A DNA stretch of 64,000 nucleotides from NCBI RefSeq assembly GCF_011386835.1, contig NC_088794.1:1116001-1180000 (forward strand). The letters run 5' to 3'. The notes under the pieces are model-generated. The model ran no database searches, had not been told where the DNA came from, and saw nothing but the letters and a program-made list of their open reading frames with translations. A program made the position numbers and the translations under genes. Positions 3,985 through 20,256 of the stretch are shown here, in pieces (positions within the stretch are counted from its first letter, which is position 1; each line of letters opens with the position of its first letter). The stretch comes from Chrysemys picta bellii. Lineage: Eukaryota.

Positions 3985-4862
3985 GTAGCAGAGGGGCCTG
4001 TGGCACCTTTGAGACTAACAGAAGTATTGGAGCAGAAGCTTTCGTGGGTGAATGCCCCCTTCGTCAGACGCAAGTAATGGAAATCTCCAGAGGCAGGTAT
4101 ATATCAGTGTGGAGATAACGAGGTTAGTTCAATCAGGGAGGGTGAGGTGCTTTGCTAGCAGTTGAGGTGTGAACACCAAGGGAGGAGAAACTGTTTCTGT
4201 AGTTGGCTAGCCATTCACAGTCTTTGTTTAATCCTGATCTGATGGTGTCAAATTTGCAAATGAACTGGAGCTCAGCAGTTTCTCTTTGGAGTCTGGTCCT
4301 GAAGTTTTTTTGCTGTAAGATGGCTACCTTTACATCTGCTATTGTGTGGCCAGGGAGGTTGAAGTGTTCTTCTACAGGTTTTTGTATATTGCCATTCCTG
4401 ATATCTGACTTGTGTCCATTTATCCTCTTGCGTAGTGACTGTCCAGTTTGGCCAATGTACATAGAAGAGGGGCATTGCTGGCACATGATGGCATATATAA
4501 CATTGGTGGACGTGCAGGTGAATGAACCAGTGATGTTGTAGCTGATCTGGTTAGGTCCTGTGATGGTGTTGCTGGTGTAGATATGTGGGCAGAGTTGGCA
4601 TCGAGGTTTGTTGCATGGGTTGGTTCCTGAGTTAGAGTTGTTATGGTGCGATGCGTGGTTGCTGGTGAGAATATGCTTAAGGTTGGCAGGTTGTCTGTGG
4701 GCGAGGACTGGCCTGCCTCCCAAGGTCTGTGAAAGTGAGGGATCATTGTCCAGGATGGGTTGTAGATCACTGATGATGCGTTGGGGAGGTTTAAACTGAG
4801 GACTGTAGGTGATGGTCAGTGGAGTTCTGTTGGTTTCTTTCTTGGGCTTGTCTTGCAGCAGG
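3985..4862 (-). mobile_element. 5'-truncated Penelope-like retroelement, GIY-YIG endonuclease C-terminal part
   Basis: ORF 4133-4723: NVIYAIMCQQC..MYIGQTGQSLRKRINGHKSDI..HFN..ELQFICKFDT..GLN, the Penelope-type GIY-YIG with extra Cys/His; terminal repeat motif at 3990-4070. Confidence 0.9.
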
Positions 4863-5489
4863 ATTAGGATTGTGGATTAGGTACAAATAGGTCTGGGAAA
4901 TCCAAAAGCAACATGGAATATGTGGTGGTGGTTGAGCACCACCTCCTGGCTGCTGTATGAACAACAAAGAGAATTAGGGAATAAAACTGCCTTGGCCATA
5001 GGACGTACTGAGATGCAAATTTTTAGTTTAGCATCCCTGGAGCACGTTTTGGGTGATATCTGGGAATGTTCTGGTATTAATACATCTTTTAAAACAACAA
5101 AAGTTACAGAAAATCCGACGTTTACTCTAGTTCAAACCTGCCAGTGGCCCGGGCCCCAGGCTGCAGGGGAAGGTGAAACCCCCCCAGGGTCTCAGCTAGT
5201 CTGACCTGGGGGGAAATTCCTTCCTGACCCCAAATACAGCGATCAGTTAGACCTTGAGCGTGCGGGTGAGACCCACCAGCCGGACGCCTGGGACAGAATT
5301 CCCTGTAGTAACTCAGAGCCCTCCCCATCTAGTGCCCCATCCCCGGCCATCCGAGATCTCTGCTGCGAGCAGTCGTGGATTGGCCACACGGCATCGTAGG
5401 CAGTCCCATCATCCCCTCCCCTCCACACACTTATCAGCGCCGGCTTGAAGCCAGTCAGGGGTTTTACCCCCACTGTTCCCCTTGGGAGG

Positions 5490-7027
5490 CTGGAACGATG
5501 CTGCCTTTGGCGGGACTCAACTGAGAGTGTCAATTCAGGACAAATTGCTCAGAGCAGGGCAGTCACAGCCCATAGCTGGGGGTCCTTTGCACACCAAGGA
5601 AACCAAACCAGCCAGACTAAGAGGACTTCGGTCTCACCCCACTGGCTAACCGCAAGTCTCACAAGCAATCTCCTTAGACACTCCAGTTTCCCAGTATTAC
5701 CACCAGTACCACTCGTTATGGGGACGAATGGTTATGAAAACCAATACCCCAGTAAAAGAAAAGAGTTCTCCTGATCCTAAAGGACCAAGCCCCAGACCCA
5801 GGTCAATATACAAGTCAGATCTTACCCACAAATCACGCTACTGCCAATCCTTTAGAATCTAAAACCTAAAGGTTTATTCATAAAAGGAAAAAGATAGAGA
5901 TGAGAGTTAGAATTGGTTAAATGGAATCAATTACATACAGTAATGGCAAAGTTCTTGGTTCAGGCTTGCAGCAGCGATAGAATAAACTGCAGGTTCAAAT
6001 CAAGTCTCTGGAATACATCCCCCGCTGGGATGGGTCCTCAGTCCTTTGTTCAAAGCTTCAGTTTGTAGCAAAGTCCCTCCAGAGGTAAGAAGCAGGATTG
6101 AAGACAAAATGGAGGGTGGTTTCTAGGGCCTTTTATATCCTCTGCCATGTGGCTTGTGCTTCCTTTGTCCCAAGGACAAGCCACCCAGCACATGGCCTGG
6201 AAAAATCTCCAAGTCTGTCCCTAGGCAGGTCCCAGCCTTGCTGAGTGTCACGGAGTGTGGGGGAGTCAGGGCCCTGCACCCCTCTTCCTGAGATTCACTG
6301 TGACTCTCAACCAGCCAGTAAAGCAGAAGGTTTATTTAAGGACAGGAACACAGTCTCAAGCAGAGCGTGTAGGTACGACCAGACCCCCTCAATTAGGTCC
6401 CTCTGGGAGGTTCAGGGAGCTTAGACCCCAGCTTGGGGTTCCCTGCGTTGCACCACCCAGCCCAACCTGAAACCAAACCAAAACTCCTCCTGCCGCTCCT
6501 CTCTTCCCCCTCCCCCCAGCTCCTCCTCTCCTTTGTTCGGTCTCCCGGGCAGAAGGTGTTAATTCTCCCCACCCCCATTCCTGGCTCAGGTTACAGCTCA
6601 GGTAGCTTCCTTCAAGGGAAGTCCCACATCCCCACTGCAACCCCCCTGCAACATTCCCAGGTCAAATCTGCCCCGCTCCCTGCTCCGTCACACTGAGTCA
6701 CCAGGTGTATCTGCTTCTCTCAATGGGTCAGTTGTAGCTGATGGTCCTTAATGGGCCATCAAGCAGGCTAGGCAGAGCTAACACAAACTTGTCTGGGGTG
6801 TCTCCCAGAAGCAGAGCACAAGTTTGAAATACAGACAGTACAGAGCCAATATTCATAACTTCAACTACAACATTGATACACACACAGATAGCAAAATCAT
6901 AACCAGCAAACCATAACCTTGTCCTAGACACTTTATTTAACCCCTCTTAATACAAGATTTGGTGCCACTACAGGACCTTGGTTGCAACAATGATTGATAC
7001 GGTCCCAGTTTGTGTTAATAACGTCAC
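5490..7027. mobile_element. LTR-like repeat (family A), interrupted by a younger solo LTR at 6246-6692
   Basis: Shares long blocks with 15551-17790; ends ...AACGTCACA. Confidence 0.6.
6246..6692. mobile_element. Solo LTR (TGTCACGG...CCGTCACA) with 5-bp TSD CTGAG
   Basis: TG..CA termini; CTGAG on both sides; the empty site is visible in the family-A copy near 17680 (gccttgctgagtcacc). Confidence 0.8.
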
Positions 7028-7295
7028 ACCCTCCTGATCGTGAAGAAAAGTTTGAAAACCTGACCCGAGCGCCCCGTAAACGTTCGGAACCAACATTTAT
7101 TATTGCTTAAAACCTCATGATTTCTACGCCAATCACATGGTTTTGGGGTCAAATTGGGAGTGGGGAAGGGAAGGCCAGAGGCGCTGAGCACCCGAAGGAG
7201 AAATGTGGACCCGTGGTTAGGGGAGGGGACGGGGCTCTGGTTCCCCCGGCCCTGGGGACCGTTCCCTAGCGCCTGCTCCTGGCAGATCCTGCTGC

Positions 7296-7741
7296 TCAGA
7301 TGGCCCAGGCCTGGTACTTTTCCTTTATCTCCTTGATCTGCAGCAGCAGATAATTCTTCCATGGATCCCGCACCACTGCCCCACCTCCCCGAAATGGTCC
7401 TCTCCACAGGGCCGCCCGGTTCTCCGTGTACACCACCACGTAGACCACCCCCACCCTGGGGGGCTCTCGTTCAGGCACTTGTGACGGTCCCTGTATCGGT
7501 CGATCAGGCGCTGCTCGCTGAACCTCGCCAGGTGTCTGGCTGTCACCTGGGAGTAGTAGACGGTGTCTTTGAGGAAGAGATTCTTGAGTTCTGTCCACTC
7601 CTCCGACTTGGGCCCCGTGCGTCGGAGATAGGAGGACACCGTTTCAGTGTAGCCAATGTAGAAATACTTTGTATGGCTCCTGGAGACCTCCTGGATCTTC
7701 TCCTCCAGCTGTTCACACGACAGCTCCCAAACCGGCACCAT
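7296..7741 (-). CDS. Small single-coding-exon protein (~148 aa), GIY-YIG nuclease-like with apparent circular permutation; one 1-bp frameshift in a homopolymer near 7450-7465
   Basis: ORF 7325-7741 (MVPVWELS..KYFYIGYTE..LRR..SEQRLIDRY..KCLNESPPG) continues in the adjacent frame as GVVYVVVYTENR..KEKYQAWAI* (ORF 7296-7598). ATG in good context (aggATGg), acceptor at 7807, AATAAA on - strand at 7096-7101. Confidence 0.6.
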
Positions 7742-8591
7742 CCTCCGGCTCCTTTGGCCACGCCGAGCTCAGCCCCAGGGCCACAGCCTGCGTCCGTCCT
7801 GGTGATCTGCACGGGAGAGACACATCCCCTCTCAGCCAGGGCTCAGACAGACAGACAGACAGACTGAGCCCCCCTCGGCAAGAGCCCCCCCTGCCAGGCG
7901 GGACAGGATCCTGGGGGCATATCCAGCAGGAGCGGTAGGGATGGGGCATCAGGGAGCCCAGCGCTGGATCCTGCCTCCGGCGTCATACTGACAGACTGGA
8001 CGGGGCTCAGGGAAGGGCCACAGGAAGGATACGAGGGCCGGAAAACCCGCCTGGCAGCCCGAGGCCGAAGGAGCTTGGACGTGGAGCGGGAGGGAGGGTG
8101 AGAAATGACTCGTTCCGGCTCTAGAAGTAGCTCCACAGGAAGAGATTTCCGAGAGCCGGGGGCTCCTCCCCCAGCCGACAGTGGCAGAGTGAGGGCCCAG
8201 GCTGGGGGCTGGCGCCAGACGCGTTCACACGGGGAAAAAGGCGCCAATGTTCAGTGGGGCGGGGACTAGCCAGGGGCCGGCTTGCTGGGGCTGGGCGGAG
8301 GCTCCCTCCCTCGCCAGCTCAGGAAGCGCCGCTCGAGCTCAGCCGGGAGCGATGGGGCCGGGGCAGGAATCGCCGGGGAGAGTCTCCGGCCTGGGTCACA
8401 CAGGAGCTCAGACGGGGTGGGCACCACGGGCCCTGCTGGCCCTGGCGTCTCTGAAACTCCAGTCTCTGCCCAGGACAAACCCCCAGGACAAACCCCCAGC
8501 TCTCCCCTCCCCGTGCCCCGACCCAGCTCCCCCCACCCCAGGGACCCCTGGCAGCCCCCGGCTCTGACCCCCGCCCCCTGCCCGGACTCAC

Positions 8592-8718
8592 CCAGCCGCG
8601 GGAGGAGCCGTGTTAACGCCGTGACCCGTTCCCTGCTCTGCATCGCTGCTCCCAGCGCCCGGCTTTAAACCACATCGGGCCCCGCCCCGCAGGGGAATCT
8701 CAGCTGCATTTCCTGAAA
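8592..8718 (-). promoter_or_regulatory. Putative promoter and first exon of the 7296-7741 gene
   Basis: On the - strand, in order: TT-N5-AA STAT-like (8709-8718), kB-like GGGGAATCTC (8692-8701, one mismatch), GC box (8681-8690), TTTAAA (8664-8669), then a GTGAGT donor at 8591. Confidence 0.35.
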
Positions 8719-18129: not shown

Positions 18130-20256
18130 TCATTCCCGGTTCTCCCTTCCCCGCCTCCTGTGCAGACAAAGCACAACGGCAGCCGTGAGAATGATTCCTG
18201 CTCCCAGCACCAGCAGCCGGATGGTCCAGTGATGTGGGGACAGCGTTCGATGTCCGGGCTCAGACTGGGTTGTGTTCCCCTGCAGACCGGGCCGGGTCGT
18301 GTTCTGAGCAGGGGGACCTGAGAGAGAGAGAGAGAAAGAGACATCCTGAGATCTCCTCCCAGTCAGCTCTGTCTGCGGAACTCTGAGGGGCTGCGGGTCG
18401 GGAGTGAGGGGCACCGGCAGAGCTGGGGGGGGGCAGGGCTGGGCTAGCAGGGGCTGCGGGTCGGGAGTGAGGGGCACCGGCAGAGCTGGGGGGCCAGGGC
18501 TGGGCTAGCAGGGGATGCGGGTCAGGAGTGAGGGGCACCGGCAGAGCTGGGGGGGGGGCAGGGCTGGGCTAGCAGGGGCTGCGGGTCGGGAGTGAGGGGC
18601 ACCGGCAGAGCTGGGGGGCCAGGGCTGGGCTAGCAGGGGGCTGCGGGTTGGGAGTGAGGGGCACCGGCAGAGCTGGGGGGGGCAGGGCTGGGCTAGCAGG
18701 GGCTGCGGGTCGGGAGTGAGGGGCACCGGCAGAGTGGGGGAAGGGGAGATGGGGGCGGGGCAGAACTGGGGGACGGGACGGGGATACAGGGGCAGGGCAG
18801 GACTGGGGGACAGGCTAGAAGCGGGGAAGGGGATAGAGGGGCAGGGCAGGATCGGGGGGCAGGCCGGGAGTGGGGAAGGGGATACAGGGGCAGGGCAGAA
18901 CTGGGGGACGGGACGGGGAGACGGGGGCAGGGCAGGACTCGGGGGCAGGGCAGGACTGGGGGGCAGGCTGGGGGCAGGGCAGGGGAGGACGGGGGGGCAG
19001 GACTGGGGGCAGGGAAGGGGATAGAGGGGCAGGGCAGAACTGGGGGCGGGACGGGGAGACGGGGGCAGGGCAGGACTCGGGGGCAGGGCAGGACTGGGGG
19101 GCAGGCTGGGGGTGGGGAAGGGGAGACAGGGGAGGGAAGGGGAGACAGGGGCAGGGCGGGGGGGGGGGGGTACCTGTGACGACGAGGTGGGTCCCAGACC
19201 CCAGCAGCAGACAGGGCTGTCCCGAGAGCAGCAGGACGAGGTGGCAGCGATAGACGCCCGAGTCGTTGCCCCGCAGGGCCCGGATGCTCAGGACGCTGGT
19301 GGAGCCGTTCTCCAGCCGGGCCTGGCCCAGCCCCGTCGCCAGGCGGCCCCGGTGCCAGCTGGCCCTGAGGGCCCCGGGCGGCGGGGGGGGTTCCACAGTG
19401 CAGCTCATCTCCAGGGACGCCCCCTCCGGCCGGGCTGCCCACGGGGGGCGCTGCTGCACCCAGAACTCAGAGCCCCCCAGGCAGCGACCTGGGTGGGGGA
19501 GGAGAGTCAGAGCTGGGAGACGCTGGCCAGGCCCCCTGTGACAGAGTGGGGAGGGGGGCGGGCTGGCCTGGGGATGGGGCGGGGGAGTTGTACTGGGACT
19601 GGGATATCGGGGGTGACTTTACGCTCAGGTATCGTCCCTCAAGTGACCTGAGAGCCCGGGGGGCTGGGGCCAGGTGACACCTGCCCGGAAACTGGCCCAA
19701 GGCTGGGGGAGGAGCCGGGGGGGTGAGATGGCTGGGGATGGGGTTCAGTTTGGAGCTGTCTGGGGAAGCAGAGGGAGGCCCAGCACCGGGGTCTGGGCTC
19801 CCTGCCCCCCAAGATGGACCTGACTGAGGGGTCCTGTTCGCTGTACCTACAAGCTCTGGTTTAGACCATGTTCCTGTCGTCTAATAAACCGTCTGTTTTA
19901 CTGGCTGGCTGATCGTCCCGGGAATCACAGGAAGTGGGGGGTGCAGGGCCTTTTCTCCACCCACAGTCCGTGACACCCCCCACCGAGATCCCCCCCGCCA
20001 CCCAGCCCCCCCACCCTGCACTAGATTGGGGCTCCCTCACCACCCAGCCTCCCCCACCCAAGACCGGGGCCCCCTTGCGGCCCAGCCCGCACCCCCACCC
20101 CCCGAGATCCGGGTTCAGCACCCACCCCCAGAGCAAGGACCAGCCCCTGCCCCGCAGCTCCATGCGTCTGGCGTGGAGGTTTTGCCCCCTGCACTCACCG
20201 CGCTGCCGGGAGCCGCCCGCCAGCCACAGGAGAGTGGCCCAGAGCAGCAGGCGCAT
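18130..20256 (-). CDS. Type I membrane receptor with one V-set Ig domain, TM arginine and 10-aa tail (NKp30/NCR3-like or TMIGD2-like), 186 aa
   Basis: Exons 20256-20199 (signal peptide [15 protein letters not shown]), 19488-19174 ([17 protein letters not shown], phase 1-1) and 18317-18130 (stalk with NTT x2, [34 protein letters not shown]). All GT-AG; 561 nt in frame. Confidence 0.8.
18380..18730. repeat. ~60-bp minisatellite in Ig-gene intron 2
   Basis: Unit ggggctgcgggtcgggagtgaggggcaccggcagagctgggggggcagggctgggctagca; the same unit forms the array at 33990-34935. Confidence 0.9.
18730..19165. repeat. G-rich low-complexity tandem repeat
   Basis: ggggcagggcaggactgggg variants; almost no C/T runs on the + strand. 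Confidence 0.8.
19537..19975. mobile_element. Solo LTR in Ig-gene intron 1, TSD CCCCC
   Basis: TGTGAC...GTGACA termini; same family core as 13489-13952. Confidence 0.75.

Follow-up and report, generated by a model that had tools for sequence, protein, structure and literature searches.

A frameshifted turtle gene and its unannotated protein family: a probable, and plausibly strand-permuted, relative of the GIY-YIG superfamily

What kind of gene changes its reading frame inside its only domain, and is the change an error or a property of the genome? The question is raised by a window of 64,000 nucleotides (nt) from the turtle Chrysemys picta bellii (contig NC_088794.1, positions 1,116,001 to 1,180,000; all coordinates below are window positions), in which an open reading frame (ORF) runs on the minus strand from an ATG at 7741 to 7325 (7741..7325) and the apparent continuation of its protein lies in another frame. 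A first-pass annotation, made from the letters alone, had read this locus as possibly an uncharacterised vertebrate nuclease, a stand-alone and apparently circularly permuted member of the GIY-YIG superfamily whose frame had been broken by a one-base sequencing error. Here we show that the locus is a real, spliced, two-exon host gene with a natural frameshift allele, and that its intact product, about 150 amino acids (aa) long, has as its core a stand-alone small domain of about 110 aa. Taken as a whole, the explanation that we favour, by no great measure, is that of a host gene with a divergent GIY-YIG core, a permuted strand, a Tyr where the catalytic Arg would stand, and, in the window's genome, a deletion allele that is probably null.

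The frame change can be placed to within a few nucleotides. In the first frame (frame A), the minus-strand coding sequence (CDS) 7463..7741 encodes residues 1-93, comprising an N-terminal helix, the YIG strand (7663-7646), Tyr38 (codon 7630-7628), Glu76 (7516-7514) and Asn91 (7471-7469). Translation confirmed the proposed residues and their numbering, namely Y28-I-G-Y-T32, E76 in S-E-Q-R-L-I-D and N91 in C-L-N-E-S, with R40-R41 between them. Frame B, one base off, is open over 7463..7299 on the same strand and reads PPRVGVVYVVVYT..., that is, it passes through P-P-R-V-G-V-V-Y-V-V-V-Y-T and then on to the stop at 7298-7296, and its coding segment (7299..7457) holds a GIY-like strand G-V-V-Y-V-V-V-Y (7451-7428) followed by C-terminal helices. 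The closest database match, and the only close one, is an intact 153-aa protein of Platysternon megacephalum with 82% identity, and the Platysternon contig is syntenic with window 6693-8112 and further. Aligned to this DNA, the window has 10 nt fewer exactly at the frame change (7452..7459, after the Asn motif and ahead of the C-terminal strand), plus a separate in-frame gap of 6 nt. The earlier annotation was thus right to see a G-V-V-Y strand after the Asn in the other frame; what separates the two frames is this 10-nt deletion and not a single base lost from a homopolymer.

Sequences from other samples settle the status of the deletion. A contig from a different sample and study under the same species label (X10, organism A) equals the window over a 788-nt stretch, deletion included. 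Contigs X4 and X9 from a sister species (organism B) carry 10 additional letters at 7452-7457, restoring the S-P-Q-G-K-H-R-P that is also found in Platysternon. In a third sample of organism A (X8) the contigs break at 7452/7459, and a loose end of 14 letters there has the undeleted form. Given a 10-nt difference from three other sequences and an independent contig identical to the window, a homopolymer sequencing slip is ruled out: the deletion is a natural allele, real in the window's genome, and it appears to segregate within the species. A real frameshift combined with the lack of any intact ortholog had been named as one of the outcomes that would refute the nuclease reading; the frameshift is indeed real, but intact orthologs exist, in Platysternon, in organism B and in the undeleted form of organism A. 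Since the frameshift is real, the window's allele is probably null, and it should be annotated as a natural frameshift variant rather than have the assembly "corrected".

That this is a gene follows from its structure. The match of contig X10 to the locus ends at 7807 and resumes, in a loose end, with an exact match to 8593-8622; the join of 7807 to 8593, with one letter common to both sides, corresponds to a canonical GT-AG intron of 785 nt (GTGAGT...GTGCAG, 7807..8591 on the minus strand) in the 5' untranslated region (UTR), and the splice acceptor predicted earlier is therefore real. On either side lie exon 1 (8592..8645, minus strand, its 3' end at 8592 and its 5' end inferred) and the 5'UTR part of exon 2 (7742..7806, minus strand), the entire CDS falling within exon 2. 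A TTTAAA box at about 8672-8666, some 25 nt upstream of the likely transcript start, suggests that transcription begins near 8645. Ten codons 5' of the ATG, frame A contains a TGA (7771-7769), so the protein start is at 7741; exon 1 opens only an upstream ORF of 30 codons, from an ATG at 8643 to this same TGA, and coding exons farther upstream are thereby ruled out. The 3'UTR region (6932..7101, minus strand) contains two AATAAA signals, at 7101-7096 and 6937-6932, in agreement with the polyadenylation signal noted earlier; X10 reaches 7020 and X9 about 106 nt past 7000, and the first signal is overrun. Because the spliced contig stands at depth 6 in a run of only 109 million letters in total, we infer that X10 is RNA, in which case the deleted allele would be transcribed and spliced. 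Many small organism B runs, which come from four studies and range from 42-226 million letters in size, contain 85-90% of the CDS words, far above the expectation from DNA coverage, and the gene is therefore probably expressed in that species too. Contig X9 of organism B, at depth 24, spans 7409-8154 and remains colinear through the 5'UTR intron before ending near 8150-8190, and intron retention, or an alternative start inside the intron, is possible in the sister species. Within the window's copy of the intron, at about 7838-7874, there is a (GTCT)n microsatellite that exceeds its Platysternon counterpart by three units; it was passed over as a repeat when contigs were aligned to the locus.

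The protein does not stand alone. An exhaustive search of representative proteins places it in an unannotated eukaryotic family with three turtle loci, one tunicate gene and members in other eukaryote-like assemblies. Besides the Platysternon ortholog, that turtle has a paralog of 67% identity, and eight more members share 35-52% identity, among them a 387-aa tandem-domain protein of Mauremys, Platysternon and Chelonia and a protein of the tunicate Styela clava. The Styela gene has an intron inside the domain and sits between a 2-oxoglutarate (2OG) oxygenase gene and a T-box gene, from which we take it to belong to the cell's own genes and not to a recent mobile element. Nearly invariant in the family alignment are F27, Y28, G30, T32, Y38, L39, T42, P44-K45-S46, K58, Y63, E76, L79, I80, C89-L90-N91, G101, Y104 and Y108. 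None of the members matches Pfam at threshold; a retrotransposon gag match below threshold (E 0.006-0.07), confined to the close turtle sequences, was taken as noise. A sequence profile search of PDB returned no named family, and of the structural comparisons proposed for this protein, Foldseek likewise named none against PDB, AFDB-SwissProt and Atlas, and against AFDB clusters found unnamed proteins only (best E 2.7e-3). Pattern scans gave no relatives in bacterial or archaeal genomes or in viral contigs, and no second copy was found in the window. The idea of an immune effector or a horizontally acquired gene found no support in any of these tests, and the tunicate member, as noted, has an intron of its own.

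Is this family then kin to the GIY-YIG enzymes? The tests that bear on it are individually weak and the curated tools are silent; taken in combination, they make kinship with the superfamily probable. The nearest protein-language-model clusters are GIY-YIG (0.92), T5orf172 and MUG113, with scores of 0.90-0.92 and all of one clan. The best that a curated family model gave was a match of one member (P0006) to Pfam T5orf172 with E 0.17 and 12.9 bits, against a curated threshold of 20, in register at YIG. From annotated records we built a seed alignment of T4 I-TevI, I-TevII, SegA/F/G and EndoII and of Escherichia coli UvrC, Cho and YhbQ, against which the family core (residues 22-95) scored 23.1 in hhalign, aligned from YIG to Asn, with column-shuffle controls at 9.5 and 9.3 +/- 1.8; our hhalign P values, 7e-4 to 6e-5, are against this kind of single template, and against a low-diversity YhbQ alignment hhalign gave nothing. 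A hidden Markov model (HMM) of the seed, run on all six-frame ORFs of the window, found its best match in the frameshifted ORF (E 0.046), above the presumed Penelope endonuclease ORF at 4876-4136. Conversely, when the family HMM was run on T4 and E. coli loci, EndoII ranked first and I-TevII second of 990 ORFs.

The residues themselves fall into the same register. The YIG box lies in a predicted strand (25-32), with G30 invariant across the 11 members and Y28 kept in all but one. Glu76, which corresponds to the metal ligand E75 of I-TevI, is present in nine of the 11 aligned rows; of the remaining two, one has its Glu a column away and the other, the second domain of P0008, has none. Asn91 is kept in 10 of 11 members and is Asp in the other; the Asn of this motif E may be Asp, or missing, in some GIY-YIG families (PMC1564403). 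The Glu-to-Asn spacing of 15 equals that of I-TevI E75/N90, as the first-pass annotation had stated and as we checked on the I-TevI sequence of the T4 record. Two gapless blocks link the family to I-TevI (PF01541, PDB 1LN0), G19..F24..W28 corresponding to G30..V35..L39, and E75-x2-W-I-x2-L-x6-Y-N90 to E76-x2-L-I-x2-Y-x6-L-N91, and no named nuclease domain other than that of I-TevI turned up, in register, in both structure searches. AlphaFold models of P0001 and the distant P0011 (pLDDT, the predicted local distance difference test, about 81 each) have the same topology.

The order of the strands is where the family departs from its putative relatives. In the superfamily the order is beta-beta-alpha-beta-alpha, with the GIY strand directly before the YIG strand (PMC1564403). 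Here, as the first-pass annotation had observed, there is no GIY-like strand upstream of YIG; what lies before it is no more than a helix and a short strand without conservation, and the GIY box of the first hairpin is absent from that place. A GIY-like strand, G101-x-x-Y104, comes instead after Asn91, as G-x-[VI]-Y-[VL]-[VL]-x-Y, well conserved and predicted with high confidence, its Tyr104 kept in 10 of 11 members. When this C-terminal strand was moved before the core, hhalign gave 29.3 (P 6e-5, probability 64%) in place of 23.1, with the strand aligned to the GIY strand. Other family segments in the same place gave 23.0-23.4, the strand reversed gave 26.9, and the strand shuffled gave 25.0 +/- 1.9 with a maximum of 30.6, so the profile scores favour permutation without being decisive. 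A first strand transferred to the C-terminus would fit both these profiles and the conserved strand after Asn, and on the sequence we regard a circular permutation of strand order as plausible. No form of the word "permutation" occurs in the phylogenomic survey of the superfamily (PMC1564403), and full-text literature searches returned no paper on such a permutation; what they turned up was either an incidental co-occurrence of the terms or the permuted domain order of Penelope-like elements, a different matter from the strand permutation proposed here.

The active site departs further. The residues conserved in the active site of the superfamily include an Arg (bioRxiv 10.64898/2026.03.19.713005). 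With I-TevI G19 placed on G30, Arg27, which sits in the helix following YIG, falls on Tyr38 (the YIG Gly + 8) and His31 on Thr42, and position 38 is Tyr in 11 of 11 rows. R40 and R41, put forward earlier as the catalytic Arg, therefore do not occupy the canonical position, and they vary among homologs (W, Q, R, L, C or E at the one, R, S, T, E, Q or Y at the other, and Q-S in the intact Platysternon protein), so that of the residues expected to be conserved YIG, Glu and Asn are kept and these two are not. The absence of the catalytic Arg sets the family apart from the superfamily on this feature and makes nuclease activity uncertain; we consider such activity in the intact forms doubtful and less likely than not. 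The conserved Lys45 and Lys58 might compensate for the lost Arg. Of the uncharacterised vertebrate nuclease proposed at the outset, then, a host gene with an intron, homologs and a stand-alone domain is supported, and the activity is questionable, with Tyr38 where the Arg should be.

How else might these observations be explained? The domain could be unrelated to GIY-YIG, perhaps a new alpha/beta fold, its YIG, Glu and Asn having come together by convergence or chance. We hold this to be unlikely, given that five different tests agree on both the superfamily and the register, and that GIY-YIG proteins, of which there are nine among the 990 ORFs, would take both top ranks by chance with a probability of only about 7e-5. 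The domain could also derive from GIY-YIG and yet not be permuted, if strand 1 is supplied by a short strand near the N-terminus (residues 4-6 in P0001, 8-11 in P0011) after a helix insertion and the C-terminal strand is an added edge strand with a non-catalytic Tyr. Both models do place a short strand before the N-terminal helix, and the profile gain from relocating the C-terminal strand is modest, but the N-terminal segment is poorly conserved, has no conserved Tyr and brings no gain when placed before the core (23.0 vs 23.1), while the C-terminal strand is among the best-conserved parts of the protein (G101, Y104, Y108); we consider this arrangement improbable.

A further alternative, compatible with the explanation that we favour, concerns the gene and not its fold: the locus may be a decaying pseudogene in the window's turtle lineage, transcribed without consequence. 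It is a serious contender, at somewhat less than an even chance. The ratio of nonsynonymous to synonymous substitution rates (dN/dS) is 1.01 between the window and its Platysternon ortholog (dS 0.109) and again 1.01 between the two Platysternon paralogs, the frameshift allele is found in two samples, and the flanks are conserved nearly as well as the CDS. However, Platysternon, organism B and one sample of organism A have an unbroken ORF, the window gene keeps all the family motifs, the gene is spliced and contained in many small runs, and a dN/dS near 1 would fit a mixture of purifying and diversifying selection too. The selection analysis that had been recommended thus divides the family: the tandem-domain paralog, compared among three turtle genera, has a dN/dS of 0.30-0.54, and so the family includes constrained genes, whereas the lineage of the window gene, at about 1, is either diversifying or relaxed. 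This dN/dS and the segregating frameshift jointly point to a gene that is dispensable in the window species.

The explanation that we favour can be put as follows. The core of about 110 aa would be a divergent member of the GIY-YIG superfamily, its YIG strand, next helix, third strand, Glu helix and Asn motif colinear with those of I-TevI, and the GIY-type Tyr strand after the Asn would most likely have come there by circular permutation. Intact members would either have an altered active site, which may be formed by Tyr28, Tyr38, Tyr104, Glu76, Lys45 and Lys58, or have lost nucleic-acid cleavage. In the window, the 10-nt deletion shifts the frame just ahead of the C-terminal strand, so that the product is cut short before one of the core strands and the allele is probably null. 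This allele would segregate in the species, in a gene lineage evolving at a dN/dS of about 1. A bolder version, to which we give little credence, is a new family, in chordates and others, of stand-alone permuted GIY-YIG enzymes that have Tyr for the catalytic Arg and are still active on nucleic acid or another phosphoester; in turtles it would be fast-evolving and polymorphic for presence and absence, fitting a role in genetic conflict or defence. A family with strand 1 at the C-terminus and Tyr for Arg would be a measure of how far a small nuclease fold can rearrange, and would join SLX1 and the ANKLE1-like proteins as a third type of cellular GIY-YIG protein known from animals.

SLX1 and ANKLE1 were, according to one paper, the only two animal GIY-YIG proteins with a biochemical characterisation (bioRxiv 10.64898/2026.03.19.713005). 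The likeness of the new family to SLX1, ANKLE1/LEM-3 and the LEM-3-like Hotaru is that all would be cellular GIY-YIG proteins of animals; those proteins, however, are detected by Pfam and have the canonical beta-beta-alpha-beta-alpha order, the Arg together with the Glu, and partner or targeting domains, all of which the new family is without, and it is patchy among lineages. T5orf172 and MUG113, which resemble it as nearest language-model clusters and through the in-register P0006 match, differ in their canonical strand order and in being mostly bacterial or viral.

A comparison of another kind lies within the window itself, where Pfam recognises a GIY-YIG domain (PF01541, E 1.4e-5) in an ORF on the same strand 2.4 kilobases away (4876..4136, minus), presumably the endonuclease of a Penelope-like element. 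The family profile does not match this neighbouring ORF, in keeping with the earlier view that the two are unlike. In contrast to a Penelope-like retroelement, which occurs in many copies and joins its GIY-YIG endonuclease to a reverse transcriptase, the turtle gene is single-copy in the window, has its own intron and UTRs, has no reverse transcriptase, and lies at a locus that is syntenic in Platysternon. Platysternon has the DNA around the Penelope-like ORF (4871-6246) as well, in the syntenic position, so the insertion is old.

Several minor observations concern the surroundings of the family members. The tandem-domain gene has a further copy with a broken frame in Mauremys reevesii (L004 20670-21140), 9.5 kilobases downstream of the intact single-exon gene, and both copies lie within a leucine-rich-repeat (LRR) protein gene on the opposite strand. 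The 1057-aa protein P0003 is a tandem-repeat protein matched only via repeated short stretches, and the 575-aa model P0015, in which an SPC25 signal-peptidase domain is joined to the tandem family member, probably reflects an error of gene modelling. The gene model of the Platysternon paralog is wrongly fused to an immunoglobulin (Ig) V exon, the paralog being flanked in L002 by V-set Ig genes. The Ig-like stretch of the window at 19298-19564 has no Pfam match, and its minus-strand part 19328-19504 has 43% protein identity to the Ig V-like exon of that fused model (L002 18937-19137). Finally, a high-copy repeat adjoins the 3'UTR of the window gene, where depth at 7000-7040 reaches 31,647 in X8 and 16,842 in X4, against about 10-17 in the neighbouring DNA.
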